From positions 22,258,001 to 22,322,000 of the forward strand of contig NC_079171.1 of NCBI RefSeq assembly GCF_947568905.1: a stretch of DNA of 64,000 nucleotides, in the 5' to 3' direction. Shown here piece by piece: positions 7,838-45,700 of the stretch. The notes below the pieces were generated by a model, which was given only the letters and a program-made list of their open reading frames with translations, was not told the DNA's origin and searched no databases. This DNA comes from Ostrea edulis. Taxonomy: Eukaryota. Both the position numbers and the translations under genes were made by a program. How positions within the stretch are numbered: the stretch's first letter is position 1; each line of letters opens with the position of its first letter.

Positions 7838-10800
7838 TCGTCCCTATGGAATAAAATTCGTTCCTATGTATATAAATCAAAAATCTTATGAAATATCTAA
7901 ATATAATTATTGATTTCTATTATCAATACGTTTCATTTTTATTCATTATTTTTATTTTTATGAAATCACGATTTTATACGAAGTTTTTGCAACAAGTACT
8001 AGGCCTACCCGGAACAACAGTGGGTAAAATATAGAAGCAACTTATTACATGTACGAATTTCCAGGTATTAATTAAAATAATAAAGTTGTAACAGGAAAAG
8101 TTATTTTGGTCTGAATTTGCCACATCTGCAAATATTTATCTATATGTATATAACTTGGTTATTGATATCATAAAAAACAACCACGACGTGCAAATGAGGC
8201 GTGTTTAGCACATAATGACATCATCATCTTTCCCAACATCTTCTAATACTTGTAATAAGATATTTTGAGACACACCTGCTATCAGATTTTGAAATAATTT
8301 ATTTTTAAGTTTTGCTACATTTTTAACCAGACACATCGATATCCAAAATTGAAACCTAAACTGGCATGTAAACGGCGAGATTAAACATTCATTTTGAAAA
8401 AAAAAAAATAGCATGTTTTGACGATGTTCTTTAAAATTAAAATCAAAATACATTTTCTTTAAAACAAAATATATGTTAATGAATTGATCGACACTAGTAA
8501 ATTGCACATAAATAACATAAATATTACATGTATTTTTCAATTCGTCACATTTGTGGATGGAATGTTTTGTAATCTCCGTCTCCCTAGCTTGACGTCACTT
8601 CCTTTAAATCCGCCTTCCTATGGATTGACGTCACATCCTTTGATTATACGTGGTGACATCGAATCGAATTCTTTCTTTGTTATGCCTCCATCCCCTTGAA
8701 AAAAAAATGAATTTCAAATTGCATTATGCATATTCATTCCGAATTCAATCTGTGATGTAATACTTCATATTCCTTCACGAAAATGACCGATTCGGAGTGG
8801 GGAAAAGAACATATTCTATAAGTATGTATTGCAATAGACAGGTCTTTCTTAACAAATTTTATTGTATGTTTGGGAAGGGGGTGGCCTTTAGATACATATT
8901 TTGTGCATTATAATTGCACAACAGAATGTCAAATTTCAACTGAAAGGAAAAACTGTACATTCACTGTATATTGTAGAAGAAAGCTATAATGCCATTGTTG
9001 AATTGTCATGATTTATTATTGTTCTTTGACGACTGCGTTGGTTCAGGGATTGGTTTTTTTATTGTTATATATAAACATGAGGTCCAGCTGTATTTTATTT
9101 TCCACATGTTTTCCATGAATGAAATGCATCCTACAGTTCACAATCAATGACTATTATTTAGTACACTTACCTGTGTGAAATATTCCATAGACTGCTTGGT
9201 CTATCCTCAGTTTAATTCATATATCCTACACATTTTTATCATATGTTCACACAGAGTTAAGTACATAGAGGCTACCATTGTATGACATCATCAACAGTGA
9301 AGTTGGCGTATTAATTCAAAGTTATACAAACTTACCTTATTGCTACTATGTGTTGTTGTTTCATTTAGAATTCACATAGGTGATGAGATTTAATCAATAT
9401 GATTTAGTCTTTTATTGTTGTTATCATTACTATTTTGTGCATGCCCAAGGATACATTTTCTTCCTTGTAGGTAGTGAAGTCACAAAATGTAGTGCAGTGA
9501 ATTCAGCATCTATTTGAGTCAATTAACCGGGCAAGTTATTCAATTAAATTCATTGAGTTAATTAAAATAACTTGTATATCATTCTTGTATCAAGATGACA
9601 GTGTTTATTGCATGATTTAAGATCAGTTTTTCCTGTCAGGAACTGTCAGGAAAATTGAGTAATTTGATTGGCTAATTCCTAGCTGCTGAAACTGTATAAG
9701 AAAGGAAGAAGCTCAATTCAGTTAGACAGCTGTCTCAAGCACATCAGTGTCAGGACAAAAACTGAGAGAAACTTAGGTACAAAAATGATTTTGTTGACAG
9801 GAGATCATAATCGTTATAAAGAAACTATTCAATACTTCCCTATTTAATACCGGTATTTGGATTACTACAATTACTTGACAACTGAAGAATCCTGACAAAT
9901 AAATTCCTGACAAGTAAAATCCTGACAAATAAATTCCCGACAGAATCCTGAAAATTGAAATTCTGACATCTTATTTTCTGACAATTTAATTCCTGACAAC
10001 CTAAAATTATTGAACATAATTATTATAGTAATAATTAATTCCTGACAGCAAGTAGATTCTCTTTGCCAGAGTTATTTCCCTTTTATTCCCCTTTACTGAA
10101 CAATGCTATTGAAACGAATTTGCTATTATCTCTGTGTGATAAATATTTTCCTATATATTCCTTTTATTTGAGTTAAAGTTGTGAAACCGGAAATGAATTG
10201 AAAGTTACCAATACATTGACCAATCAGATAGCTAAATTTTAGCCAATCATAATGCTCAGTCACTATTCAATCAGCTTGAAGCTGTAGGGTATAAATACTG
10301 TGAAACCAAGTCAGTCTACACACTTTAGGCAACTATCTAAATTATTTGGACAAATTCAAGCACAGAGCTGGTGGGTTTCTGCACTGGATCCGATGGGGTG
10401 CTCCCTCCGTACCTCCTTTGCCGCCTCCTAAACACAGTCTTCAAGAAGACCGTCTCCCTGGTTTTACTGAGGGAGATCCGAGGGTCGATCGACCACAGAC
10501 GAAGAATAGCAAGCTACCTTCAAGAAGCCCTTCCCCCCGACTATACTGTGGGGATCCATGGGCAATCGACTCTAGGAAGAGGAGATGGACCCATCAACCA
10601 CCTTCTGGAGGACCTAACCATCCCCGGATCTTCAGGAAGACCCGTCCCCGTTTCCAGGAGATCCGAGGGTCGATCACCATCGTCGCCTCGCCGCAACAAA
10701 CCAAGTGTAGCAGGGCCCCTACTGGGCAGTCTGCACTATAAATCTTCACTATCGTCGTGGTATTCTACACACATCTGGACCAAGAACATCGATTAAAAGA

Positions 10801-13258: not shown

Positions 13259-16209
13259 CTTTAATATTATCCAGATCGTTGAACAAATCAAAGCCCAAAT
13301 TCGAATCCACAAACAATTTAATCATCTCCTTACGAGTTATGAGATCGTCCCCGTCCTGATCATACATGCGGAAGTGACATTGATTGGCAATAATCATTAC
13401 GTCATAGTATCCGGGATTCTATCAGAAGGTGAGAGAAAAATACAATTCAATAATTCCATTATCTCAGTACTTAGTCATGATATGCATGGTATGAGTTATG
13501 AATTCGACATATAAACAATATATCTACAAAAGCATTTGCTAAATACTTGCCTCGTCATTATCAGTTGATCTTTTGAACATCCAGCTGACGGATACACCGA
13601 AGTCCGGATTGGAACCTTTATTTTTTGTGCCTCTGGCTGTAAATTTCCAGTTGCCTTTTCTGATACTAAAACTACCTCCCCCGTTTCCTCGAAAATCGGT
13701 CGCTGCCGAAGCTCCAACATCCCATTTTGAACCTTGATGTTCAAGTTTTATCTGAAGCTGTCGTCCAGTTTTGGTATGTATGGTATCAAAAGTAACACTT
13801 GTATCTTTACAGTGAACTATCGCCAGGAGCGTTGCTAAAACGCAGATGAAGTTTATTCCCTATGAAAATGATAAGAATGATATCAAACTATCATACAAAT
13901 ATACAGTTCAGACTGTTTCTTAATCTACATAAAGAGTCAAAGGTCTATCAATTTTCTGGATCCGCCACTGTGCTCGTATCATAACTCGACGTCATTAATT
14001 ACAAGGAATTCCGTCTACGTCATTAATTAAATTTAGTTTAGAAAATGTCAAGGGCAGAGTATCATTTGATCAATTTTTTCTTTACCAGCTCAACACACTT
14101 CAACACGACCTAGCAATGAAAAAAGACACGTGATTTTCACTTCTAATGTCGGACGTTTGGAGAAGGAAATCACTGTCTGTATCACACGTCTTAGGGTTGA
14201 GCGGCACCGGGATCAAGGATCGAATCTACGACCCCCTAGTTACGACCCCAGGCTGTCGCGATTGGTTCCACACGTACAATGTCATCCTCACATCTAAATT
14301 TACTAGCGTGTTGTAATCGGAAATTGTGTTTGCATAGTTGTTTTACGTTACTTCTACAAATTTTCGTTCATATTGAGACCAGGAGTAGACATTTAGACCC
14401 ATGCATAGGGCTCAAGGTTGTAGCAGTGAGTTCTTTATCGTGCCTACACTTGACGCAATGATAGTTCTTTATCGTGCCTACACTTGACGCAGAGTTCTTA
14501 ATCGTGCCTACACTTGACGCAGTGAGAGTTCTTTATTGTGCATACTATTGACGCAGTGAGAGTTCTTTATTGTGCCTACACTTGACGCAGCGAGAGTTCT
14601 TTATCGTGCCTACACTTGACGTGACACAAAACCTTGCAGAGACGACTACGTCTCATACTTGGGTTTGAACTCGGGCTACCCGAGTTGTAATCGAACGGGG
14701 GAGAGTTTCAAATCTAGTGACACTGTGACACATGAACTGTACCCAACATTAACCCTGCCTTCTACGATGGTTAGAGTGGTAGCAATATGGCGGTCGTGTA
14801 ATGATACTGCGCATGTGTCAATTTTCAAACGAGGAATGTGATTGGCTGGAGTATTATACATGGGAGTGAGAAAGAACATTGGAATATTTACCCTACTACA
14901 TGTAGGTACGTATTCGGGTAGGAACCATGCAATGTTTTATTAAGGTCTCACCCAAAGAGCTATAACTTTCACTAAGGATCAACCACTACCTACATATAGA
15001 TTCTGACGTGTCTTAGATTTAATACTGTATCTGAAGCAGGACTCGACTCCGTGATCGCTTAGTTATGTACAAAGTAAACAGTCTAACCATCATATTGGAT
15101 GACCTTTATTAGAAGAATTGAATTAACCTTGAAATTTTAGCCACTAGAATTATCTAAATAAATTGCACTTTAAAAAATGTGTGCAATGGTTATACCTAAC
15201 ACGAACATCAATTTGTTTACAACTTCATTAAAGGTCTTGCGTAAAAATATGACATTTTACAGGAATATATACATGTAATTGTATTTCTACTGAACGAAAG
15301 AGTTTTGCTTACAATTTATACTAAGACTCAACATTGTAGGGATTTGTAATGAAGGGATGTCTTTGAAATATAACCGTTTCTTCATATTTCAAATTTGGGA
15401 AAAACTGTATTTCTAAAACAAACAAAATTAAGACTGTCAGTTGGAAAAAATTATTTGCAGTTACCATGCATCAAAGTGTGTATTGTGAGTTTGAAATTGC
15501 ATAATTATGTAAATATCTAAAGGTAAATTGCACGTGCAAGGTTTGATATTTGACGCAGTAAGAATATATCAAATAAAGTCTGTTATCATTTCTCATTAAC
15601 TTGTGATTATTAATTACTGCAAACAATGGGACATTTTGAGTTGTTCTGCTGGTGTGTTGTACAGATCTTCCGGCACGTTTATTTTCCCACATCTAGCGGG
15701 CTGATAACGGAATTCTGAGCAGGATTGGAAAGCATTAAATAATATACAATGTATTTATTGTGTTCAGTCATGACGAATTGCGAAATCGGAGAGAAAACTT
15801 GGAGTCGGTGTATTGATCAGCCTCCAAAACAAACGTCTTCTCAGAGAATAGTTAGATAGTTAATATTAACATAATAATAATTGACATTACATGTAGCATA
15901 ATCCTGTAATGACCCTGTGTGAAAATTTGTTTGCTAATTTTAAATCACTTCGAAAATTGTTCACACATACTAAGCCGTATTACCTATGATTGACCCTAGT
16001 ATTGACCCTAGCATTGGCAGGACTTTGGTGTTCAAGTTTTATCGTTAAATTCTTATCCAAAAAATCTGCGACTCTTAATTTCTACATGTCGGAAGTTTGG
16101 CGAAGGAGCAAATTATCTACTTATTTTAACTTCTTAGAAATCACACAGCCAAGGAATGAGTAGGGTTGTAGTTCATATAACGAACGTCCTATCCACCGAG
16201 TCACCGAGA

Positions 16210-19474: not shown

Positions 19475-21044
19475 CTAATAACTGGCGCATCCATTGATTA
19501 CGAGTGGCGCCATTTCGTCGAATTCCTCTTTTGTGATTCGACCATCTCCTGAAATAATAATTTTAAAAAAATTAAATTATGAAATGATAAATTTAAAAGA
19601 CAAAATTTACAAGAATTATCGATCAATACAAAGTGACAACTAATATTACTTTACAATTGTCCTATATACCAAGTCATCAGTCAATATACATGTACTAATT
19701 TGTCTGTCAATATACTAATTTATCAGTCAATATACTAATTTGTCAGTCAATATTCTAATTTGTCAGTCAATATACTAATTTTATCAGTCAATATACCAAT
19801 TTATTAGTCAATATACTTTATCAGTCAATATAGCAAACTATTACATGAAAGGCTCTCATTGCGCTGATCTTTGGATCTTGAAGAATGCATATAATATATG
19901 TATAAGTAAACTTAATGAATATTCATAACAGATTATTAGACCAAGCACATACCTTTGTTGATATCAAGATCATAAAATAGCTGAGATCCGAATTCTGGGT
20001 TTTCAAACAAGTTGGTCATTTCCTCCAGAGTTATGAAATCGTCCAAATTATCATCGTAGCTATTGAAGTGGCACTGATTGGCTTGGATTAAAATGCTAAA
20101 TTTTCGTGGAACCTGTGATTGAAAACGTGTGATTGAAAGAAACATATTCACAAGAAATCAGAAAGAATATGCGAACACATGATTAAAAACAAAGAATAAA
20201 TAGCGAAACTGCGCGAGCAATCGTCCCCACCCACCCCAAAAAATTAAAGCAAACACTAAAAGGTAACAATTAACTGGCACTTTCTATCATTTACTTAATG
20301 ATTTAGACCATGCAAAACAAATCAAGCATGCAGAGCCAGTAATATATTGTACATGTGCATTTTTTTCTTTTTTCTTGAGGGTGATAAAATGGTTGTTACT
20401 GCCATGAATGAGTTAATAGAATGGATTAAAGTCCCAAAATCAAACCGGACAAATCATATATTTGATGTGTCATTCTCACAGACACTGTCTTCTTAATCTG
20501 TATACTTACGTCATTCGTTGACCTTTTGAACCGGATTCCTACGCTCACTCCGGCTTTCCAACCACCACCAAAATTGGTAGAGCCCCATCCTTTAAAATTC
20601 CAATTTCCGGATTTGTGTCCGACTGTAAGCTTAAGTTCCGGTCCTTTATTTCCGGTTCCCAATCCCAGATTAGCTGACCAGGGCTGGCCATAGCCCAAAG
20701 ACAGCAATGTTGATAGGACGCAAAAAGAATAGAGCTGTATCTAGAAATTAAGAGAGCCCCTCGTTGTAAAATTGGCAATATATAATGTACATTTGAACAA
20801 CTCGCAGAAGAATTTTCATCGGTCAAAAACATATTGAGATTTTCTTACTCTAAAATTAACATTGACACTAGAATTAAAATCGAGGTGCTTAAGAATGTAA
20901 TAAGTCATTCGTTGTTAAACGTTGGAACTGAGTGGTACAAATGTTTTTCAAAAAGTTGATGAATTTCTAGCTTAGAAGGAATACTTCAACTTCATACTTC
21001 TTTAGTTTTAATTCTAAAAGCAGTTTGAGATTACTAACCTTCAT
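19475..21044 (-). CDS. Paralogue A: complete 156-aa secreted precursor = signal peptide + 53-aa Gly/Trp-rich cationic peptide + KR site + two-EF-hand acidic pro-domain
   Basis: Exons 21044-21039 (ATGAAG|GTTAGT), 20740-20510 (231), 20112-19953 (160), 19548-19475 (74, TAG); all GT-AG and phase-consistent, 471 nt. Protein MKIQLYSFCVLSTLLSLGYG-QPWSANLGLGTGNKGPELKLTVGHKSGNWNFKGWGSTNFGGGWKAGVSVGIRF-KR-STNDVPRKFSILIQANQCHFNSYDDNLDDFITLEEMTNLFENPEFGSQLFYDLDINKGDGRITKEEFDEMAPLVINGCASY. AATAAA on the minus strand at ~19296-19301. Confidence 0.9.
19700..19832. repeat. Short ~18-bp tandem repeat (gtcaatatactaattt...) in intron 3 of paralogue A
   Basis: Direct inspection. Confidence 0.8.
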
Positions 21045-21099: not shown

Positions 21100-21203
21100 T
21101 TAATGAACGAAAGCCCCGGTCGTATTTATATATATACTTGAAGAGGATTGTTCATTTTTCCAAACATATGAATAAGGGGTTTCCCTGATTTTTAATGACG
21201 TAA
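21100..21203 (-). promoter_or_regulatory. Promoter of paralogue A: TATA box, NF-kB/Rel site, CRE/CEBP-type site
   Basis: TATATATAAATA (minus) within 21123-21136; GGGGTTTCCC at 21176-21185 fits GGGRNNYYCC; TGACGTAA at 21196-21203. Confidence 0.7.
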
Positions 21204-23248: not shown

Positions 23249-23890
23249 CCCTTATAGATCACCAATCCCTACTGTACATGCCCCTACAGAGCACCAATCA
23301 CTACTGTACAAGCCCCCTTACAGAGCACCAATTATTACTGTGCATATCCCCTTAAAGAGCACCAATCACTACTGGACATACCCCTTCCAGAGCAACAATC
23401 ACTATTGGACACGCCCCTTCACAGAGCACCAATCACTACTGTACACGCCCCTTACAGAGCACCAATCACTACTGTACACGCCCCTTACAGAGCACCAATC
23501 ACTACTGTACACGCCCCTTACAGAGCACCATCCACTATTGGACACATCCCCTTACAGAGCATCAATCACTATTGGACACACCTCCCTCTTACAAAGTATC
23601 AATCACAACTGTACACACGCCCCCTACAGATCACCAATCACTACTGGACACGTCCCTTTACAGAGCACCAATCACTACCGTACTCCCAATCTTACAGAGC
23701 ACCAATCCTCGTTGTGCACCCACTTACAGAGCACCAATCATTACTGTACACGCCCCCTTACAGAGCACCAATCACTACTGTATACGCCCCCTTACAGAGC
23801 ATCAATCACTAAGTACTGCACGCAAGACACGTTACAGAGCACCAATCACTACTGTGTACACCCCCCCCCCTCCTCAGCACAAATCACTGC
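23249..23890. repeat. 33-bp minisatellite (gccccttacagagcaccaatcactactgtacac), about 19 copies
   Basis: Period 33 measured at 23447/23480/23513; explains the three overlapping repetitive ORFs. Confidence 0.95.
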
Positions 23891-26800
23891 TGTGAAAGAT
23901 CTTAAACCTGAATCCCTATGTGGATAATGGCTGTATATTTACTACTTCTGTATGACAATGTAGCATTTTTTTAAATTATGCAAATGCCTTAATCTATTGC
24001 AACGATCTCTCTACCTTCCCTAGACTGTACACGGTATTCATTTAGACCTTACATACCACATAACATGCTCCATGTGTACAGCATTCACACTAGGGAAATT
24101 TGGGGCTAATTTTTTATTAATAAATCTGTGATCTTCTATATTTCCAAGCGTGCAAAAAATGCACAACATTAACCTTAAAATTGACTCTTTTTATGGCATT
24201 GACAAGTCTATATATACAATCAAAAACATATCATTTCGACGTCCGGGTACTTTTGAATACACTTGGTTGTACGGTAAAAATCCGGGTTCATAAAGCCGAA
24301 GGTGATTTCATGACGGACATCCGTAGAATAATAAAACAGATCTATACAAAAAAAAACACATCTTATGCCCATAACATATGTGTAAACAATTTTATTTTTC
24401 TTCATAACCTATACAACTATTTCTCATTTCTCCCTATTTTTTACGGATCATTCCGATATGACTCCATTTTGCATTCGTAAACGAAGCATATGCAAAAGCA
24501 TAATTTAACGTACTCAAATACGTGCACGTCTTAGTACGCTACAGCACTTTCGCCTACTTTATCGGTTACGTTTTTATTCGTTATCGCTTTGTTCCCTTAA
24601 ACATATCGCTCTTTTAAAAGGAATTAGCGAGTTCAGATATGCCATAACGTTTTGAAACACACTGTACATAATATCACAATATCATGAATATTCGTAAGAA
24701 TACTTTAGTTATTATTATTTTTTTTTTATTTTATTTTTTACACTTTCCATGTACAATGATTATTGCAGAGGATGACTATCGGCATTCCAAAAGCACTTGT
24801 TTCTGTAAATAACTTAGGACCTCTGTATATTAATAATAACACAAGGTATCTTGTGTTATTATTAGTATAGAGAGGTCGTAAGTGTTTCACAGAAACATTA
24901 GTGCCTGTGCGGCATTCCCTGAATTTGTAGATTTTTAAAATTCTTTTTTATATCTTTATGTAATGGCACATGATATGCGTAGGTTTTTCAAGTTTTCACA
25001 AAAATACGATTATCTAAATACGGTTATCTAAATGTGTAGCCTATCACGTAATAATTTTAAATGATTAAATGTAATTATTTCACTTAAACATTTATATAAC
25101 CCTAAAACGCTTTACATGCATAACAAACTGAAACAAAGAACAATAAATACATAAAAAAAAAAAAAGTTTCTACATTCTTATTTATTATCAATGGAAAAAT
25201 CAAGTTAAAACATGGGGTTTTATTCCTATTGTTTTACGTTTCCTCGTGCTGCACAATCCCGCCGCAGCTCTGATTCCGCCGAGTGGGGTCAATCAAATGA
25301 ACACCAATGTAGAGATGAAAGCATTTCATTTACAGAAAATGATGAAATTATATTTGACCGTTCCACAAGAAAACACTCGCGGCTATATAAACCCAGGTTT
25401 TTTTTTATGCTGTAGCTGTCCTTTAACAATATGAACCCGGTTTTTCGAATATCCAATTAATTACGCTGCGGCCACAATCTAAATACGGTAGCGCATTACC
25501 GCACCAACATTTTATTTGATGGTTCGTTAAAACACCTCTTATGAAGATTTCTAGTATTTTTTATGGCGAAATTACCATAAGAGGTTTGTTAACGAGCCAT
25601 TAAATAAAATTTTAGTTTAATGAAGTACCTTAAAATCCGACCTTCTCTTACCGTTACACCTTCTCCATTGTGACGGTTAAAGAAGATTTAATTTTAATAA
25701 GACCGACTGCAGCCGCGGAAAGGATATGAATTACTAGATGGTCTCGGTGCAGTGATGCACTACGCCCCCGACTATCAGAGACATGCACTGTGTTACATAG
25801 ATGTACATGCACGTGCATGGTTTTAAACTTTGACAGGTTACCTTGACTTTTTATCTGATATTAAACTTTGACCCCGACCTCAGTTCCGTACATCCCTTTA
25901 AAATCAGGACACAATGTCTATCTGTAGACAGATGGGCAGTATAAAATAATACGCCCCTGTTCTTCTGTCTTGAGAAGCATGAAAATAAAACATGCCCACG
26001 GTTCTTCACAACACCGTGCTACCATTGTACACATTAAAGAACCTCTTTGTTAATCATCGTTACACAAATTTTTTAAATTTCAAATATCATGTATATGTTT
26101 CAAAATTTGAGATGTTCCTAAAATTGATCAGCTGATAGCTAAGTATGAATCAACTTTTATTCAGGAAAAATATCACATAACGCATGAGGAATAAAAACAG
26201 ATAGCACTCATAAGATATACAGAAATGTTCACGAATAGATGTCGTCTCTATATTGTAACATCGTCAGTATATTGCAACATCATTTCTCACTCATTCCACG
26301 CACACATACATGTACATTATTATAATAATTCATACATTATATGACACACCTATAAAAATTCACATTTTCTAACAAGCTCTATTCATTACCACAAAGTTTG
26401 TCAATATCCCAAAATGAAAGAGAAAATTTTAGTTAAAAAATGAAAACATGTATTTATCATCTTTAGTAACAGTCAGTCCTCTGAAAATTTCGTTGTTAAA
26501 CATTTTTCTTACCAAAGCTTGCATATCTAGAATTATTTGTATTCTTACTTCCACATATATATATATATATATATATTCCATACACTGAAGACTCTTTACA
26601 TGAATATACATCACACATTGATTAGAAATAAATTTTAGTTAGGAAGCAATCTGATGACATGTATGACAATCCTTAATTTATGACAAACACTTCACACACA
26701 CTAAAAATTAGATCTACATGTATACACACAATCCACTCATATATATTTTTTTCATGTGATAAAAATGTTCCTCAACCTCTCCATTTATAAATATGCTCTA

Positions 26801-29740: not shown

Positions 29741-32700
29741 TTACGTCCAATCCTCATCGTCGATATGGAAATATGTGAAACTCCTAAGCCAGTGAAGGGA
29801 AATGTCGTACACAGTGAAACTGGTTCCCACAGCAATCGGGCCTTTGATCCAGTTCATGCTGAGTCCTTTGTAGAGACCCCTCCAGCCCTCGGTTCTCCAG
29901 ACCAAACATACTGTCTTGTAGATGGAGGTGTAGTCGTGGCTGTGGCCTGTCACCCCTGTAATACAGCCATCAGAGTGAGTGAAAGGTCAAGATAACGAAC
30001 AGTCTTGATCAAGTAAAGGAAGTAATCTGTAGTCAAATTGGTGTGAAATAAATCACCGTTTATCAGCAAGGAAGTTATTTTTGCAAAGTCTCTTTTAATC
30101 ACAAAATAAGATTATTAAGTATACTTTTACATGTATACATAGTGTACACAAATCTCAATCATCGAAGAGCTTTACAGAATGTATATACATGTCTCACTAA
30201 TATGTAACTGGAAAGGTGAAGATAATGAACAGTGATCAATTTTGTGACTCCTATAATGAATACAAAATTAAGAGTTGGCCAAACATGGACCCCTGGACAC
30301 ACCAGAGGTGGAATCAGGTGCCTAGGAGGAGAAAACATCCCCTGTTGACCAGTCACACCTGCTGTAAGCCCTATATCTTGATTGGGTGTCATCCGTTGTC
30401 AAACATTAGTGTGTAAACAACAGCAAACAATTGGTATGAAAGATGTCAGACAGCATTTGACCCATTGACAGGTACAATGTAGTATTGGCAAATTACATTG
30501 TTATAATGTCATAGAATTTGCGACATGCTACTAAATTTAGTACAATATCAAAATGGAGGGAAAAGTCTACAAAGTGGGGCATCCTCATACAGGGCACATT
30601 GGAATATTTCCATGGAACCTAGAGTTATTAAAACACAATATCGACCCTGATAGTACATACTACACACAGGATAAATGTCACCCTTATTTTCACCCTTATC
30701 CTACAAGGATGATTTTAAAACTCAATGAATAAAATTCTTTCATTACTTTAGAGTAGCAAGAAATAAACATGGGCAAATTTAGATTTGAACAAAACCATGT
30801 TCCATTGTCTTTGGATGAAAATAAAACAAGGCAAAAATTTCCCTCTATACAGTAAGTCAATTATAGGACTTCACTCTGACAACTTGAAACATATATACAT
30901 GTACATTTAATTATCAAGGCAACAATACATATATTCTTTCCCCAAATTTTACAAATGCTGTAGAATTTTGCAAAAATACTGAAATATACAATAACAGTGC
31001 ACCAGATAACACATTTGCACCTGTAGATGTCTTACCATGAAAGTTACAGATGGTCACAGACAGACATAAGAATATGTTCAGTGATTCCAACACACCCACA
31101 GTGACACACACACAAACAGAAAGAATCCTACCTGCTGTTTGCATCCTGCGACGTACAATGTCCAATGGATAAGAAGCAGATTGCCCTAATAAACCAGCCA
31201 CTGCACCAAAACTCATCCTCTCAATGGGGGTGGGGTCCCGACCATCACAGTGACCTTGAAAAACATTAAGAGGTTCATATGCATATGTAGCTTACAATTG
31301 ATTCAATCAAACATCAGAAGCCTCTGTTATAAATTGGAATTATGAATTAAACATTTGTGCGTCGTGATCGAGTTTCATGTTACAACAAGTCATTTCAAAA
31401 TATTTACATTTCCAATGTTTTCACCTTTGATATCTTTACAAATTCTAATGAGAACCATTTCCTCATCAACTCAAACAATTCATGTATGATTTTTTATATA
31501 AAATATATACAACGATGACTAAGTACACATGATCCACATTTGATTAATTACACTTGGCGCTTTCGCCGTGTAGTTCGGCTCTTCAGAGTGCAACAAGTTT
31601 TACAAAAAGAGTACAATGTACTTGTTGATATATACAAGTAATATATTATATATGAAATAAAATTCATTTTTGAAATTACATGAGGGTATGAACTGCAGTG
31701 TTTCACACGGTCACACTTTTCATGAAGTGTTAATGCGCCTCATGAAGCGTGAAGTGTCGCATTTCATTCAGTCCTGGAATAATCACAATAAATCACCAAT
31801 TTGATTTATATTCAAATAATTTAATTCTTATTGTATCCTTGTCTCTGATTGGTCAATTTCCAATTGAGGAATGCAGGTTATTTTTGTATAACCAAGTTTG
31901 GTCAGCTGGTTTGGTAAGGGGACACACCCCCTTGACAACCAGAGCTGGAACTATTTTTTTTCCCCTCTCTCTCTAAATTTACATTGCAGCTTCACTGTTT
32001 ATAAAGCGTAAACTGACCCAAACCAGGTTATACTCGTATAACTTGCCACGGAATTAAAGTAATTCCTTAAATAGTATCAAAATATACATCTATGTTGTTT
32101 CAGTGTATTTCATTTGATAAAATAAAACCTGTCTTTTCCACTTTAAAAACCTTTACATTCATAAAATTTTGCAGGTCGATTGTACTAAGGTGGACATAAA
32201 GTGCTTCATTATTTTTACACACTCATAGTACAAAGTACCTTCATAAATACACTTCAATAAAATCTACACAGTATCTACTGGATTTCATCTTAATATGTTC
32301 TGCCCTCCTCTTCTTTAAACAGATAGTTGAATTTGCAAAAATCTCTGACAACACAAGCGATTAAAATACTTTGCAGATTGTGGGAAACACTAGGCACTGA
32401 GTGTGGCTGACTTTAATTGCTGTCGTGTTGAACTTTCATTTTTACATGTGACAGTGACCAATGTCTATCAAAAAGCATTGACCTTAACAATTGAGCTCAT
32501 AAACTAAAGAATGTTTGTTTTGTTTATTTCAAAAGATAGACCAAGGGAGAAGTATTAGAGAGACAGACTGTTGTTCATAATTGTCCATGGTAACAATTTT
32601 CACCTAAAAATGTGAAAAGCATCCAAATGCTGTAAACCAACTATTATTCACATGTGAAAATTTTCCGCAATGTTCACAAAAACCTCTAAGTCGCGACGTG

Positions 32701-35700
32701 AACCAGTCCTTTAATGTCTCTCATATTTGTTTCAGATTGTTTAGCTTCTGAAAATTAGTCGCCAAGAACCAGTTTATCACTGGTAAAACACAAAATACAG
32801 TTGTTATTAGTCACCGAGAACCAGTTTATCACAGATAAATCACGAAATTAAGGCGTTATAGTAACCGAGAACCAGTTTATCACTGGTAAATAACGAAAAT
32901 TGTTATTAGTCACCTAGAACCAGTTTATGACTGGTAAATCACGAAATAAAGTAGTTGAGAATAAAGGTTGGCTTAACATACGTATGCTTACAGTACCTGC
33001 ATGCCACTTCTTCAGAGTTTCGTATGTGAAAAAGCTGGCCCCTGAGTAAGGAATCGACCCCAGTACTGTGGGTGTGAAGCCCCTGTAGAGATTGGCAGGT
33101 CCTTCGGATTTCACAATGTGTCGAAACACTGCCCACAAATTGCTGTACCTAAAAGATATTTAAAACAATGAAGCTACTGCTTGGTGATATCAACCTATTT
33201 TGAGGCAGTTTGTGCTTTTTTAACAGTGAATCAATGTGGATTTATCACAATATGAATGTTGAGGACTTAACCACAATATGAATGTTGAGGACTTAACCAC
33301 AATATGAATGTTGGGGACTTATTAACCACAATATGAATGTTGAGGACTTATTAACCACAATATGAATGTTGAGGACTTATTAACCACAATATGAATGTTG
33401 AGGACTTAGTAACCACAATATGAATGTTGGGGACTTATTAACCACAATATGAATGTTGAGGACTTATTAACCACAATATGAATGTTGAGGACTTATTAAC
33501 CACAATATGAATGTTGAGGACTTAACCACAATATGAATGTTGGGGACTTATTAACCACAATGTGAATGTTGAGGACTTATTAACCACAATATGAATGTTG
33601 AGGACTTATTAACCAAAATATGAATGTTGGGGACTTATTAACCACAATAGGAATGTTGAGGACTTAACCACAATATGAATGTTGGGTACTTAATGACAAT
33701 AGGAATGTTGGGGACTTATTAACCACAATATGAATGTTGAGGACTTAGTAACCACAATATGAATGTTGGGGACTTATTAACCACAATATGAATGTTGAGG
33801 ACTTATTAACCACAATATGAATGTTGAGGACTTAACCACAATATGAATGTTGGGGACTTATTAACCACAATGTGAATGTTGAGGACTTATTAACCACAAT
33901 ATGAATGTTGAGGACTTATTAACCAAAATATGAATGTTGGGGACTTATTAACCACAATAGGAATGTTGAGGACTTAACCACAATATGAATGTTGGGTACT
34001 TAATGACAATAGGAATGTTGGGGACTTATTAACCACAATATGAATGTTGAGGACTTGACCACAATATGAATGTTGAAGACTTGACCACAATATGAATATT
34101 GAAGACTTATGTACAGTTTAAATGTTGAGAACTTTTCTGTTTTGTGAATATTGAGGACTTTCTGTTGTGTAAATATTGAGGACTTACTGTTGTGTAAATA
34201 TTGAGGACTTACTGTTGTGTAAATATTGAGGACTTACTGTTGTGTAAATATTGAGGACTTTTCTGTTGTGTAAATATTGAGGACTTTTCTGTTGTGTAAA
34301 TATTGAGGACTTACTGTTGTGTAAATATTGAGGACTTACTGCGCTTTAACAGTGACTGCCATTCTGGCCCTCATCAGGTCCAGTGGATATGTGAGAGATG
34401 AGGATGTTACTCCAGCCATAGACCCCGCCAGGAAGCGCAGGTGTGGAGGAAGATGTCTACAGTACAATCAAAATAGTCACTATAGACACAATATAGACAC
34501 TATAGGCACACATAAACACAATATAGACACACTGTAGACACACTATACATACAGACACAATATATACACTATATGCACACATAAACACATTATAGACACA
34601 ATATAGACACACTGTAGACACAATATAGACACATCATAGACACAATATAGACACACTATAGACACACTATACATACAGGTGTGGAAGATGTCTACAGTAT
34701 AAACAAAATAGACAATATAGACAGGGCTCGAAATTAGCGAAAAATATTCACAAAATGCAAGTACATTTGAAAAACAGCGAGTAAAAATAGTGGACACTCG
34801 AAAATCTTAGCAAGTGGCGATTTACAAACTATGATCATATCGTATCCATTTTATACGGTGATGCGCTATTCGTTTTTCTTAAACTTGCACTCTGAATCAT
34901 ACAAACGCTTACATGAACGACCGAAATCAACAACCGTTTCTATCTGGATTTTTCTTTTATGATATTTTAAGAAACTCAGAGTCAAACAAATGCTTTAGAG
35001 GTCGGGCATCGCATTATGATGAAAAATAGACATGAGCCACGAGTCCTGTTCACCTATAGGGGTGATTAAATTGGATTCGAAGTATGAGGTTTTTGTTATT
35101 CATTTATCTAAAAAAAATTCGGAGTCTATGTTTTACCAAGTCTTCCTGTAGTCATTTTTATCAGAATCATCAGAATGTCCTATCTAAATTAATTTATTGT
35201 CATATTGAGGTCAGGTTGTAGTGATGACACGAGTGCACTGCTCACCGCATAAACGATTATCAAAAAAGTTCATTGGGCTCATGATTGTGCTTCTTATAAG
35301 ACCATGAGTCCGGGATTTGCTTTGAAAAATCACTAGTGACAACCCTGATGTGCCATGAAATTGGGAGACTGGATCTAAACCTGCGGTAAACAGGTTGGGA
35401 ATTAGAGGTGCGATAATCAAGAGGAGACCTAAACATTGCACCATATGACCTACGTAACTTAGTGTCTTATTCCAAACGATGCCTGTTGACCCACTAGGCT
35501 CAGTAATGATGGGGAAAATCATTGATTAAAAAAATATGAAAAAAGAGCACTACTTCTTTATTTTTATTTTAGCTTGTAGGTTTTCATTTTAGCCTGTGGA
35601 TTTTTTACCCACAGGCTAAAAATAGCCTGTGGTAGAAAAAGTTAATTTCAACCCCTGTACAGACACAATATAGTCACTATACAGCAATTTTTTTCCTTAT

Positions 35701-38098
35701 ATAACTGGTACCGATAAACGGTACCATTCCCAATGCCAAAAACCATTAATTTTTCCCAATTTTGAGACTAAAAATTCCCAATTTACTACTTCTTGTTTTG
35801 TAGAACTCTTTTTTCTTTTCTTTTAGTTGAAATCATTTGCCGATACATTGGTAGAAAATTCCCAATTTGTTCGATTTTGATGCTATTTTTCCCAATTGAA
35901 TGGGTACCGGTACCAGTACCAATGGGTAGAAAAAAATCGCTGTTATAGACACAAAATAGTCACAATAGACACACATAAACACATTATAGACACAATATAG
36001 ACACACTATACATACAGGTGTGGAAGATGTCTACAGTATAAACAAAATAGACAATATAGACACATTCTAGACATACTATAGACAAATTCTAGACATACTA
36101 TAGACAAATTCTAGACACACTACACATACAGATGTGGAGGAAGATGTCTGCAGTATATACACACTCAACACCATCTATACACACTCAATACACACATGTA
36201 ATATGTATATACACTCAATATATACACACTCAATACATACACAATATGTATAAAATACACACTCAATACATACACAATAGCTCACACACTCACTTACACA
36301 CAAATGGTCCCATCATTCTCACAATGAATTGAAAGGGGATAATAACCAAAATTTTAAAATATAATTTTATCGCATCCCCCCCCCCCTCTCCCCAAACTGC
36401 AGGGGAAAATTCTGGAGAACTGGGCTTGCTGTGTGTGTAACCACTAAACAAAACTTCTGAAAATCTGTGTTCAGCTTCTTACTGTTTCCTCTTGTCTGTG
36501 CTCAGCAGGCGTTTATACTGTTCATGAGCGGTGTACTGGATAGAGGCATAGGGAATGATCCGCACCATGGTGGCCGAGTTCCCTCTCCAAAGCTTAGTCA
36601 CCCCCTCCTTCTTCACCGTGTCTACGAGGAACAGAATCGCCCCTCTGAAGGAAAACTGTCTGTTGGAAACTGTAAGGATATCACAGAAAATTACAGTTTG
36701 TCAATACTATCTTTTTAGTTGAATTTCGTTTTGAGAGGACTCATTTCAGTAATGTTCTCATAGTATATTAGAAGTTGATTTCTGATCTATCCCAGACTTA
36801 CATAGTTGAGAGGTGCTTTTACAGACTTACTTTGGAAGTTGATTTTTGTTCTGTCCAGCGGTGCTATCACAGTCTTCGCCACGGCTCCGGCCATTGCTCC
36901 AGCAATTAGAGACGTAATAATTTTGTTGTGGTTTGGCACCTACATATATCACAAGACATTTTCAAAACATAATTCAAAAACATTAAAAATGTCATACACA
37001 AACATTGAAGTGTCATACACAAACAATGCAGTGTCATACACAAACATTGAAGTGTCATACACAAACATTGCAGTGTCATACACAAACATTGAAGTGTCAT
37101 ACACAAACAATGCAGTGTCATACACAAACATTGAAGTGTCATACACAAACATTGAAGGTCATACACAAACATTGAAGTGTAATACACAAACATCTTTATT
37201 TCACAATGTAAATAAATCCACAAATGTTTCTTAAAACAAGTTGTCTTAAGCAGAGTATTCCTAAGAACAAATTCTCTTCAACTGTGACGCTTTCGTAATC
37301 ATGTGACACTATGTTTCACAAATGACAAAAATGATGACATCACTGACAAGTTCCCGTACCAAAGTTCACATAGATTTATGAGAAAAACAAGACCCCTGAC
37401 TAGTTTCAAATATTATATATATTTAAATAAAGTCAAATAAAATCTTTACTTACCTGTATATTTCAAAGTTTATTAAAATATTTTCTTAACTGTTTGCTAG
37501 TATAGTTAATATGATAGTTTAACAATATTAAAATGTGTTTGAAATCAACAATTATTTATGAATGTTTTTTTATTATTATTCAATTATGTAATGTGCAATG
37601 GCCAATCGTTTTCATATCTACTGAGCCAAGGGATAGTAAACGTTTTCTAATGACCAGTAAATGTCTAAGCTGATAGCTCGGTATCCTGAGGTCAGCGAAT
37701 AAAAATAGAGTCATAGAAGAAAAATGGAGTTTTGATTGTAACACACTAATTGAAATTGGACTAATTGCATTTAATTTCTACTTACTTTCTATCAATCTTA
37801 TTTCTTAAAATCTTTCACAATCATTACTTCTGTATATTTCACCATAAACTCATATATGTTCCTTTTGACAAATTGGATATTTGGTAGACGTTACATTTGG
37901 GGAATTTGGCTAAGATTTTTACCTTTCACTTAAACTTACTTTTAAATTAATTTCATGTTCCCTGTGGGTGATTTCATCTTCGCTGCCCTCATGCTCCGCC
38001 ATTGTGACTTGAATATCTCTCATGGATGCCCCCCGCATGGCTATTTCTGGAATAATCTGGTCGGCCTTTTCCGTCTTCATGGTTTCTTGATTATGCAT
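29741..38098 (-). CDS. SLC25A42: Mitochondrial coenzyme A transporter (SLC25 carrier)
   Basis: Exons 38098-37940 (start codon uncertain), 36939-36831, 36669-36483, 34456-34340, 33148-32997, 31254-31132, 29955-29741; all GT-AG and phase-consistent. Carrier signatures [32 protein letters not shown]; subfamily motifs [27 protein letters not shown] and [14 protein letters not shown]. Confidence 0.92.
30215..30520 (-). mobile_element. Penelope-like repeat fragment in the last SLC25A42 intron
   Basis: Reverse complement of the 7100 repeat (gaaaggtgaagataatgaacagtgatcaa...caccagaggtggaatcaggtgcctagg). Confidence 0.7.
33245..34335. repeat. Compound intronic minisatellite: 29/26-bp units (ccacaatatgaatgttgaggacttattaa) grading into 25-bp units (ctgttgtgtaaatattgaggactta)
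   Basis: Direct inspection; both units share ttgaggactt; runs right up to the donor at 34339. Confidence 0.95.
34470..36310. repeat. Low-complexity (acacaatatag)-type repeats with duplicated exon-start fragments, interrupted by two TIR elements (34722-35657 and ~35682-35942)
   Basis: TIRs CAGGGCTCGAAATTA / TAATTTCAACCCCTG and CAGCAATTT / AAAATCGCTG; three copies of gtgtgga(gg)aagatgtct(a/g)cagta. Confidence 0.75.
36975..37185. repeat. 21-bp minisatellite (gtcatacacaaacattgaagt), about 10 copies
   Basis: Direct inspection; explains repetitive ORFs 36806, 36906 and 36949. Confidence 0.95.
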
Positions 38099-38759
38099 TG
38101 ATGGGGTTTCTAACTGTTTTTGGCAATGTTGGTTTTTCTTATACAAACATCACATTCTGCTTGCTGCAATGTAATTCAAAATTACAAGTTTAATGATTTT
38201 GTACAAATTCTAAAGAATATTGCATTGAAAGAAAATTACATGTATAACCTGATCCATAAATCAGAGGGAACATAAATACAGCTTCCCTTAACTGTTAATT
38301 CATATATAATTCAAAATAGTATCCATCATGCTGCATAGCATATCATTTAGCTCATAATATAGATAATTTGTTCCAAGTAAATCACTGTAAACCAACTTTT
38401 ATTCAAGTGTGAGAAAATTTCGCAAGATTCGTGAGAACTTAATAGTCGGAAATTTATCGTCAGTTCATCACAAACCAGTCCTTGAATGTCTGTCATAGGC
38501 TTGAAAAAGGCTCAATCGCGAAAATTACTTGCCGTGAACCAGTTTACCACAGGTGAATCGTGAAATAAAGTAGCAGCGAATTTACAGTATATCAAAAGAG
38601 TCAAAAGTAAATCAAAAGTATATATCGCATACTAGTCCAAATTAACAAAATTAATTATTCATTCAATTAAAACATGTCTTGTCTAGTAAATTAATTTTCC
38701 TGTTTATGTAGATATCCTCTCAGTCTGATTCTACTGGTAAAGATCACTATTATTCCCAT

Positions 38760-42750: not shown

Positions 42751-45700
42751 ATGGTAATGATATCTGAATTTGAAAATAAAAGTGAGAAATTTCTTTTCCT
42801 TCTTGCGATCTAACTATTTCTTTTTTATTTTACAGGCAAAGTTTTTCAGTCAGACGGATATAGACAGTAAGTAAATGCTTCCTATTTTCTCACCTGGCCG
42901 ATTTTCGCACCTGTAGATCAAGTGACCACGCCCACAGACGGCTAGCATACCTTGTATTATACCTTCTGTTGTAAATAAATCTGAAATACCTTTTATTCAT
43001 TTCCTTTAAAACTTCATAAAACAGCACGCAAACATTGAGTAGTTATGGTAATGGCTTAGCACTTGTCACTATGATATATATACATACAGTATTACATACT
43101 TGCCACTCTGTATATTTCCCTCTACATACTCCAGAAGAAATAAAGAAACTAGTTAAATATACTCAAGCTCAATCAACTTTGCAATATTTCTATTACTATC
43201 ATTACGGTATCTTTTTATGTCAAGTATGCAAATATTAATATGCATCATGTACATGTACATAGTCTCAGATGGGTGACTGTATTGTTCTCTAGAGATTTAT
43301 TGCATGAATGGGGAAAATAGATTTGTAATAAGCCTCGACCTAATAGCTTATTAGGATAGACTCCACGAAATAAGTAATTCTGTTTTGTATTTTGTGTTAT
43401 TGCTTAATTTGTTTAAAAACAACAACATCTGTATTGTTTTAGAGTTCAAGGAATGCTTCTTCTTCCATGCAAGGAGGGGGCACATTTCCCAGGAGCAGGA
43501 GTTGTCCCTTATAATGAGGTCACTGGGATATAGTCCCACCCCACAGGAGGTGTCCAAGTACTTCAATAAGTACAACAAAGGTAAATTCCAGCGCAGTCTA
43601 TGTATCACAGCGGAGCTGAGGTCTCACACAAACTGAGTATACATTTATACCATGATTGCTTTGATATATTCCTCAGAAACATGAAAGTTAGAAGAGAAGT
43701 AGGTCAGAGTTTTGGGGGCTGACCTTGATTTGTTCTCAGGTGACCCTGGGGGAGGAGATAGGGGTAGGGAGGGGTATATGAATCCGCTCGGAACCGACTG
43801 GTGTATATATATGGGATCCTTAATTTGCCTCTTCATTTTCAAACAATGCTGGGCTGCTTCAGGCCCTTATTTAATGAATGCATCACCTCTCACTTTCTAC
43901 CTTTGCCTTCATTAATTCATTAGATGCTCCATGTTTACATTATATATCGAAGCCATAAATGATGTATACTGTATATGTGTGTAGCGGTCGGCCGGGTTCG
44001 ATCACAGGTGGCCAGTTAGCTCAGTTGGTAGAGCACCTGACTAGAGATTCAGGGGGCCCGGGTTCGAATCCCGGTCTGGTCCGTTGCATTTTCTCCCTTT
44101 CCTGTTACATGTGCATTCTAATTCTTCTAGATAAACACTCTATGTATACGAGTAATTTATTTAGAAAGGAAAATAACTCTGACCACCATTGGAAACCCAG
44201 TCGGTCACACATCTTGAGGTAAAAGAAGTGTGACTGATCGTGGATTTCCGACATCGAACTCTGACCAGCAGATGAAATACTGGGTCTGCAATCCAGGAAT
44301 TGTTGAAAGGGGAGGGGAGATTCTACCATTCATTTTGGTTTTCACAGGGGGGAGGGGTGTGCAGCCTCAAAATGCATCATTTATTTACATTTTTTTAGCA
44401 AAATTTTCTAACAAAAGGAGGGGGGGGGTCTGACCACTGGACACCCCCCTCCTTTCTGGATCTGCCACAGATACATTTGTTGATATGGTTAAACCTGACT
44501 TTGAGATTATTCGATATTTTCAGCTCAGTGACACCTGATTTATAGCCTTTCTGATCTCCTATTGTCTGGTGGTTACCTCTAATGTCCGTCCGTCTGTAAG
44601 CTTTACACATTTTCAACTTTTAAGAATCTTCAGGTACTGCAGATTCAGTTTCCTTCAAATCAGGACCCATGAATAGGATGGGACCTCATTAAGGGATCAA
44701 AGTTTTACATTGTTATATCTTTGAAAAAAAAAATTCTACATGATTATTATATAATTATATAATGATATGCAAGCATTCCAATGTAGTGCTGATTCATATA
44801 TGTGTCTGGGATTGGCTTAAATAGGAAATCAAAGTTTTACATGAGAATATATAAGAAATTCGTAAAAAACAATAATTCATTATTATATGTCACAGGGCCA
44901 CATTAAATCATATCAATATATGTAAATCTTCCTCTGAAGAGCACAGAGACTAAAATGACTTAGGTGAGCATTGTGGCCCGTGGTCAATTTATGTTGTTGT
45001 TTTTTTTCCTAGACAATAAAATAGAATTTGCCTCATTCCTGGAAGCAATGCACGACCAATCAAGTGCTGAAAATCCTGAAAAAGAATTACTGAATGCCTT
45101 TAAGTCACATGACAAAGAGAAGAGGGGTTATGTTAATGCAGCCGAGGTCCAACATATCATGATGAACATAGGAGAAAGACTGAGTCGACAGGAAGGTAAC
45201 ATTCAAAATGTTTCTCTTGAGTTAGAATTTATAACTCTGTTTGCCTGATCAGGATATAGGGCTCACGGCAGGTGTGACCGGTCGACAGGGGATGCTTACT
45301 CCTCCTAGGCACCTGATCCCACCTCTGGTATATCCAGGGGTCCGTGATTGCCCAACTCTCTATTTTGTATTGCTTGTGGGATTGATCACTGCTCATTATC
45401 TTCATCTTTCATTTAAGAAATAAATTTCATTTTTGAAATACAACTGTATATATACATGTATGAGACATGAATCTATATTTATGGTATCACAGAGTTCGGG
45501 TCCAAAATGGGCGTAGCCCGTGTGGGTATTCACTGAGGGTATGAACTGTGATACTTTACGCCTGGATTATTCATGCAGCATGTTAGTATGCCAGTGTAAA
45601 GCAGTTCAATCCCTTATGCATTGTATGTATTTTCAAAAATGAAATTATTTTTTATATTTTTATTACTGTCAGAGATTTCCCAGCTGTTAAAATAGTCGTA

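Follow-up and report, generated by a model that had tools for sequence, protein, structure and literature searches.

The closest known system to the oyster locus described here appears to be that of the mytimycin precursors of mussels (Mytilida), in which a signal peptide of 23 residues precedes a peptide of 54, and a dibasic site separates the latter from an EF-hand extension of 75 residues (PMC8004829). We focus here on two genes of Ostrea edulis, LOC125662238 (gene A) and LOC125662418 (gene B), which lie on a stretch of 64,000 nucleotides of contig NC_079171.1 (positions 22,258,001 to 22,322,000, hereafter the window), with a GC content of about 35%, spliced genes and no runs of N. In particular, we consider the peptides that their precursors would release and the last strand of these peptides, which resembles the C-terminal insertion signal (beta-signal) of bacterial outer-membrane proteins (OMPs). 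The reading that we favour, tentatively and with a probability of roughly 0.45, is that A and B belong to a family specific to oysters whose products are membrane-active beta-sheet host-defence peptides released by convertases; their last strand would serve as the inserting or edge strand. We consider this likelier than the idea, put forward in a first-pass annotation of the same DNA, that the peptides act as a decoy for the bacterial protein BamA or oligomerise into a beta-barrel.

The four-exon model of gene A yields a protein of 156 residues that is 100% identical to the NCBI entry 'uncharacterized protein LOC125662238 [Ostrea edulis]' (P0001), with a signal peptide of 20 residues and an acidic extension of 81 residues that contains two EF-hand loops and a Cys pair (ANQC...GC). 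Gene B, 7 kb downstream and also on the minus strand, repeats this exon plan, and its spliced model, which gives a precursor of 183 residues, equals the NCBI protein P0006. A and B are tandem paralogues and belong to an oyster-restricted family of predicted secreted precursors. In both of them the signal peptide is followed by a cationic, Cys-free peptide rich in Gly, Trp and Phe, then by KR-ST and by an anionic two-EF-hand extension. Across the family, the mature peptides carry net charges of +4 to +6 and the extensions of -4 to -11 (+5 and -11 in A, +6 and -8 in B), and the extensions match EF-hand Pfam models, every match being under the Pfam gathering score. The peptide ends that the first-pass annotation had reported, KAGVSVGIRF in A and DFGVSVSWMF in B, each directly before KR, are exact in coordinates and sequence in the spliced models, which equal the NCBI proteins. 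Judged from sequence, the precursors would be cut at KR, hence leaving the Phe as a free C-terminus; from what is generally known of proprotein convertases, the R-F-K-R/S of A is a furin-type motif.

The likeness to mytimycin lies in the order and the sizes of the parts, with a cationic peptide of about 54 residues, a di- or polybasic site and then about 75-85 residues of anionic extension with two EF-hand loops (PMC8004829). One mytimycin member lacks the EF-hand part, as does the C-type paralogue of Saccostrea. The mytimycin peptide, on the other hand, carries 10-12 Cys; those of the oyster are Cys-free and composed of Gly/Trp/Phe-rich beta-strands, and the Cys pair of the oyster extension is likewise its own. 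When compared with mytimycin Mgal_A, the extension of A aligned at 32% over 56 residues (pairwise E=0.001), which is the level of generic EF-hands, and that of B gave no alignment. A common origin is conceivable at best. The precursor design is common to the antifungal mytimycins and the oyster genes while the payload is wholly different, an indication that effector modules were swapped, exon by exon, onto an EF-hand pro-domain, and the oyster precursors are in this sense a variant of the invertebrate pro-peptide design for antimicrobial peptides (AMPs). Attacin, diptericin and gloverin of insects are Cys-free, Gly-rich, cationic and convertase-released, much as proposed for the oyster peptides, and are directed mainly against Gram-negative envelopes. 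Homology to these three was rejected, with no Pfam match at E<=10 and none in the exhaustive profile search described below.

In the C-terminal signature of OMPs (Struyve-type), Phe is the last residue and hydrophobic residues stand at positions 3, 5, 7 and 9 from the end (PMC1634882). Assuming that KR is removed, as proposed, both oyster peptides agree with this signature at all five positions, with I, V, V and A before the final F in A and W, V, V and F in B; the first-pass annotation had seen the hydrophobic residues at -1, -3, -5 and -7, and this is true of both peptides, position 9 being hydrophobic as well. A reduced pattern (an aromatic last residue with hydrophobic residues at 3, 5 and 7, without 9) occurs at the C-terminus in 0.1-0.2% of composition-preserving shuffles, and since A and B are homologous, the signature counts as one event and not as two. 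The agreement is less complete with the beta-signal consensus, zeta-x-G-x-x-[aromatic/hydrophobic]-x-[aromatic/hydrophobic] (PMC10945584). The dyad at -3/-1 is present, as I-x-F in A and W-x-F in B, and is kept in 12 of 12 family members. The Gly at -6 is replaced by Ser in A and B, though found in 5 of 12 homologues, and in place of the polar residue at -8 both peptides have Gly.

The resemblance to OmpX/Ail-type ends (G-x-G-Y-R/K-F, given as G-x-G-(Y/I)-R-F in the first-pass annotation) is borne out by the lambda protein Lom, an OMP of the Ail/Lom family, which ends in GVGYKF; the GVSVGIRF of O. edulis and the GVGVGIKF of the S. cucullata orthologue are both near to it. With bacterial OMP endings in general (Lom/Ail/OmpX, PhoE DDIVAVGMTYQF, PorA AASVGLRHKF) the oyster peptides share an amphipathic strand of about 10 residues, the terminal Phe, the hydrophobic residues at 3, 5, 7 and 9 and the frequent K or R at position 2. 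They differ, apart from the Ser at -6 in A and B, in being eukaryotic secreted peptides outside any barrel, and homology is undetectable. One face of the last strand of A, WKAGVSVGIRF, consists of W, A, V, V, I and F only, with aromatics at either end, a geometry that would be that of a membrane-spanning beta-strand. At the level of the motif, the OMP resemblance is real.

From the family alignments, which are shallow, AlphaFold2 models a signal helix followed by a beta-meander and an EF-hand domain made of helices. The meander has four strands in A (residues 23-29, 37-45, 48-59 and 63-74; predicted local distance difference test score, pLDDT, 35-49) and six strands of 9-12 residues in B (pLDDT 65-71), in agreement, at a confidence that is low to moderate, with the earlier reading of both peptides as beta-strands joined by Gly/Asn turns.

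The family was collected by word-index search, by cluster look-ups and by running a HMMER profile exhaustively over 1.84 billion representative proteins. At E<=0.001 the profile search returned 11 proteins, and those that are named all come from oysters (O. edulis, Saccostrea echinata, S. cucullata and Crassostrea virginica); neither bacterial OMPs nor insect Gly-rich peptides are among these 11 matches. The unnamed members are prokaryote-style open reading frame (ORF) calls from metagenome or read-archive assemblies, and they look like calls on oyster DNA because those checked read through into the intron. The family is new and undescribed, every NCBI entry being labelled 'uncharacterized'; it is lineage-restricted and multi-copy, with large indels separating the paralogues.

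In the alignment of 12 sequences, the last strand together with KR-ST is the best-conserved segment. Position -1 is F in 11 and L in 1, position -2 is K or R in 10, -3 is I, F, W, M or L, -5 is V in 11 and F in 1, -6 is S in 7 and G in 5, -7 is V or I, -8 is G in 11, -9 is A, F or V in 11 and -11 is W in 10. Positions -3, -5 and -7 are thus hydrophobic in all 12 and -9 in 11 of the 12, and KR-S hardly varies. Both the terminal Phe and the alternation, on whose conservation the first-pass annotation had staked its idea, are therefore kept in the Ostrea, Saccostrea and Crassostrea homologues. Relative to P0001, the last strand is 92% identical in P0002 (Saccostrea) and P0005 (Crassostrea) and 83% in P0003, and KR-ST is 100% identical in all three, with 67-87% for the whole peptide, 49-58% for the extension and 20-33% for the signal peptide. 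Synteny is kept too, the mitochondrial-carrier (Mito_carr) protein encoded next to gene A being 80-93% identical to that of the gene flanking the Saccostrea orthologues.

Some members depart from this layout. In S. cucullata, EF-hand-less paralogues (P0007 and its cluster-mate P0015) adjoin the A-type gene and keep the domain and the strand, here GAGVKFRF, which runs on into GGSSRRRGGGG, so that the Phe would not be terminal there. The gene for P0015 (locus L002, 13887-18115), with a longer Gly-rich domain and no EF-hand exons, occupies the place that in Ostrea is taken by gene B. A further member (the P0013/P0025 cluster; L014-L016, ENA metagenome assemblies) ends in GVGVKLKF-RKR, with no EF-hand exon within about 850 bp downstream; it is found on at least 15 short contigs, presumably oyster DNA within microbiome samples.

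Our proposal for how the peptide is secreted, cleaved and put to antimicrobial use, and for what its last strand does, is an inference and runs as follows. The anionic EF-hand extension would neutralise or chaperone the aggregation-prone peptide in the secretory pathway, and a furin- or proprotein convertase (PC)-type enzyme together with a carboxypeptidase would then produce a peptide with a free Phe end and probably an N-terminal pyroglutamate, which would act on bacterial envelopes as a membrane-active host-defence effector. The conserved strand, of membrane length and capped by Trp and Phe, would most likely be the edge or inserting strand, so that the sheet could enter the membrane and pair with other copies. 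Its resemblance to the OMP beta-signal would follow from the physical rules that both obey; the data can be explained without a specific engagement of BamA, possible as this is.

The host-defence reading is favoured by the mytimycin-like layout with its EF-hand extension, by the opposite charges of peptide and extension, by the conservation of the last strand and KR-ST, by the predicted beta-meanders, by the restriction of this multi-copy family to oysters and by a conserved kappaB-like element. The arrangement seen upstream of gene A (Table 1) recurs in the S. echinata and S. cucullata orthologues, where the site (GGGAATTCC) lies about 135-140 bp upstream of the ATG (L001 ~9860-9870 and L002 ~9865-9875); its position is thus conserved in three oyster species, along with the ACGTCA boxes and the TATA-like box, which gives weak but consistent support, from sequence, for immune regulation. 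Several points weigh against the host-defence reading. The kappaB-like site is a single short motif, such sites are unenriched across the window (3 matches against 4.2 expected), and there is none upstream of gene B. With the low AlphaFold confidence, the beta-sheet model is indicative at most. The mature peptides of the orthologues are more conserved than their signal and pro-regions, the opposite of the pattern in many bivalve AMP families, and this would also fit a signalling or structural peptide. Literature searches with the LOC names of A and B, moreover, gave no relevant paper.

When 13 mature peptides were scanned against all Pfam at E<=10, the sole recurrent family was PF03895, the YadA-like membrane anchor, which was matched by six of the 13, A and B included, with E values of 0.0038 to 0.83 and scores of 10-18 bits; the best reached 17.7 bits (E=0.0038), and every one is below the gathering threshold of 22.7 bits. 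The matches align the last 26-35 residues with the C-terminal part of the profile, to position 59 or 60 of 60, and each stops at, or one residue short of, the residue preceding KR. Reversed sequences of the four best matchers gave no Pfam match, and the likeness is thus directional and more than an alternation of Gly and Val. The anchor, too, is a unit of four beta-strands of similar length, and the last hairpin and terminal aromatic align in register. The peptide exon could be taken to derive from a bacterial outer-membrane anchor that was acquired horizontally, and the six matches running up to the peptide end speak for such descent. True homology is, however, close to refuted: besides the sub-threshold scores, none of the 11 profile matches resembles a bacterial OMP, hhalign against nine real trimeric autotransporter anchors gave a probability of 0.4%, the exon structure is typical of bivalves and the synteny is conserved. 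A local hidden Markov model (HMM) of YadA and eight plasmid-borne relatives scored the oyster peptides at 0-4 bits, equal to their reversed forms, a PDB sequence search with the exon products and the family profile found nothing meaningful, and the coiled-coil stalk of the anchor family is absent, the signal peptide standing directly before the mature peptide. Since the likeness is absent from real YadA-family sequences, it is one of motif only, and probably represents convergence on the consensus last hairpin of an OMP anchor. The same hairpin, the only recurrent Pfam resemblance, might instead reflect a shared architecture. Trimeric autotransporter anchors form a 12-strand barrel from three 4-strand units, and the units of A (four strands) or B (six strands) might oligomerise into an OMP-like beta-barrel pore; their strands of about 10 residues, with a hydrophobic face capped by Trp and Phe, recall the aromatic girdles of OMP strands. 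When the AlphaFold models of A and B were compared with the PDB by Foldseek, no match was significant (all E>=0.04). The top probabilities within this noise for A (0.44-0.57) belong to outer-membrane barrels such as AlgE and BtuB, with OmpK36 at 0.35, and would be given by any long-stranded meander. With fold matches at this level on low-confidence models, a blank PDB profile search and comparisons with real anchors at noise level, a self-assembling mini-barrel seems to us unlikely.

Mimicry of the beta-signal is an established killing mechanism of darobactin and of the lectin-like bacteriocins (Llps; L-type pyocins, LlpA/B), and with these the oyster peptides have in common a beta-strand that bears a hydrophobic/aromatic dyad and is potentially able to pair with strand beta1 of BamA. 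Darobactin, on the other hand, is a bacterial, cross-linked, ribosomally synthesised and post-translationally modified peptide of 7 residues, and Llps are bacterial lectin-domain proteins that dock on loop 6 of BamA; the dyad of Llps is never the terminal residue, and the oyster peptides are without a delivery domain. An animal-encoded mimic of the OMP insertion signal might jam BamA, or its units might be taken as OMP substrates and give leaky mini-barrels in the outer membrane, which we regard as improbable; for the more specific proposal, that the freed strand binds beta1 of BamA (or BamD) by beta-augmentation and blocks OMP assembly, the prospects are equally poor. The full and conserved C-terminal signature, the dyad, the Gly at -6 in some homologues, the directional PF03895 matches that stop at or beside the last mature residue and the ending near that of Lom all accord with such mimicry, and K or R stands at -2 in 31% of 12,949 real OMP termini. 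Furthermore, micromolar amounts of a free 12-residue C-terminal peptide of PhoE modulate Omp85 channels, and this depends on the Phe, but on E. coli Omp85 the PhoE peptide lost its effect when Lys stood at -2 (PMC1634882). In the oyster peptides, the K/R at -2 doubles as P4 of the R-x-K-R furin site, A and B have Ser where the consensus has Gly at -6, and the motif is a short one, its [hydrophobic]-x-[aromatic] end being common to any amphipathic strand with a final Phe. The C-type paralogue keeps the strand but continues into GGSSRRR, no bacterial protein is detectably related, and a peptide of 53-78 residues must reach the lateral gate from outside without a recognisable delivery domain. Literature searches for host peptides that target BamA turned up nothing relevant. 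If the strand did engage the machinery by which beta-barrels are assembled (BAM), it would belong to the first animal host-defence peptide known, in the literature searched, to exploit beta-signal recognition, and BAM is a surface-exposed target now pursued with darobactin and L-type pyocins; since the peptides are short, linear and disulfide-free, the idea is directly testable with synthetic material. Oysters suffer mass mortalities involving Vibrio, and few of their antibacterial effectors are known. Finally, the products might not be antimicrobial at all, and could be an uncleaved secreted calcium-binding Gly-rich protein, for instance of the shell matrix or an adhesive, or an endogenous signalling peptide. 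The strong conservation of the mature peptide between genera is compatible with this, and the combination of EF-hands and a Gly-rich domain recalls biomineralisation proteins, to which most of the papers found in the literature search were devoted. The KR-ST boundary, the partition of charge (+5 against -11), the mytimycin-like layout and the kappaB-like element nonetheless fit an immune pro-peptide better, and the Saccostrea paralogue without EF-hands retains the Gly-rich domain, which argues for the peptide, rather than the EF-hand part, as the functional unit that they share. A non-immune role is thus unlikely, if the least so of these rivals, and it keeps this standing because the orthologous peptides are unusually conserved.

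The features of the two genes are collected in Table 1.

Table 1. Features of genes A and B, with positions counted from the first letter of the window; mature peptides are as predicted from cleavage at KR.
Feature	Positions	Strand	Remarks
kappaB-like palindrome GGGAAACCCC	21176..21185	-	about 135 bp upstream of the gene A ATG, between CRE-like (cAMP response element) ACGTCA boxes and TATA-like box
Gene A exon 1	21039..21044	-	ATG AAG (Met-Lys), GT donor after
Gene A exon 2	20510..20740	-	remaining signal peptide, 53-residue mature peptide, KR-STND, GT donor
Mature peptide A, Q21-F73	20528..20686	-	25% Gly, Cys-free; net charge +5; beta-strands predicted: four
Terminal 11-residue amphipathic strand of A, WKAGVSVGIRF	20528..20560	-	beta-signal-like element; YadA_anchor Pfam alignment stops here
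Dibasic KR of A	20522..20527	-	furin-type context R-F-K-R/S
Gene A exon 3	19953..20112	-	start of anionic extension; first EF-hand (EF-hand_6 / EF-hand_7 weak)
Gene A exon 4	19475..19548	-	second EF-hand loop completed (DLDINKGDGRITKEEF), stop codon
Gene B exon 1	15088..15093	-	ATG ATG, then GTTAGA; NCBI protein begins at second ATG
Gene B exon 2	13551..13859	-	signal peptide, 78-residue mature peptide, KR-STDNDE; GC donor (AG/GCAAGT)
Mature peptide B	13575..13808	-	Cys-free; net charge +6; strands predicted: six; 25 residues inserted relative to A
Terminal strand of B, DFGVSVSWMF	13575..13604	-	YadA_anchor E=0.085 up to Phe; predicted strand 87-98 of P0006
KR of B	13569..13574	-	straight after DFGVSVSWMF
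Gene B exon 3	13259..13418	-	first EF-hand (EF-hand_6 E=5.8e-5)
Gene B exon 4	8618..8694	-	second EF-hand, stop codon; preceding intron about 4.5 kb

Within the two genes, exon 2 of gene B closes with the donor of a GC-AG intron (13549-13556, GAG/GCAAGT), where its paralogue A uses GT, and intron 3 of gene A contains a 20-bp minisatellite of 7 copies (19693-19832). Upstream of gene A, a 34-bp minisatellite of about 17 copies (23249-23927) gives rise to a spurious ORF of 195 codons rich in Pro, His and Thr. The Mito_carr exons follow at about 29744-38146 on the minus strand, and large 29-bp and 25-bp satellite arrays occupy 33246-34341 within this gene region. Elsewhere in the window, an element on the plus strand at 44010-44082 scores 54.6 bits with the Rfam tRNA model and is given a four-base anticodon (agag) by ARAGORN; it is probably a tRNA-derived repeat or pseudogene. 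A long ORF on the minus strand at 55369-56589 encodes at least 12 tandem C2H2 zinc fingers, as in a KRAB-less ZNF-like gene or exon.

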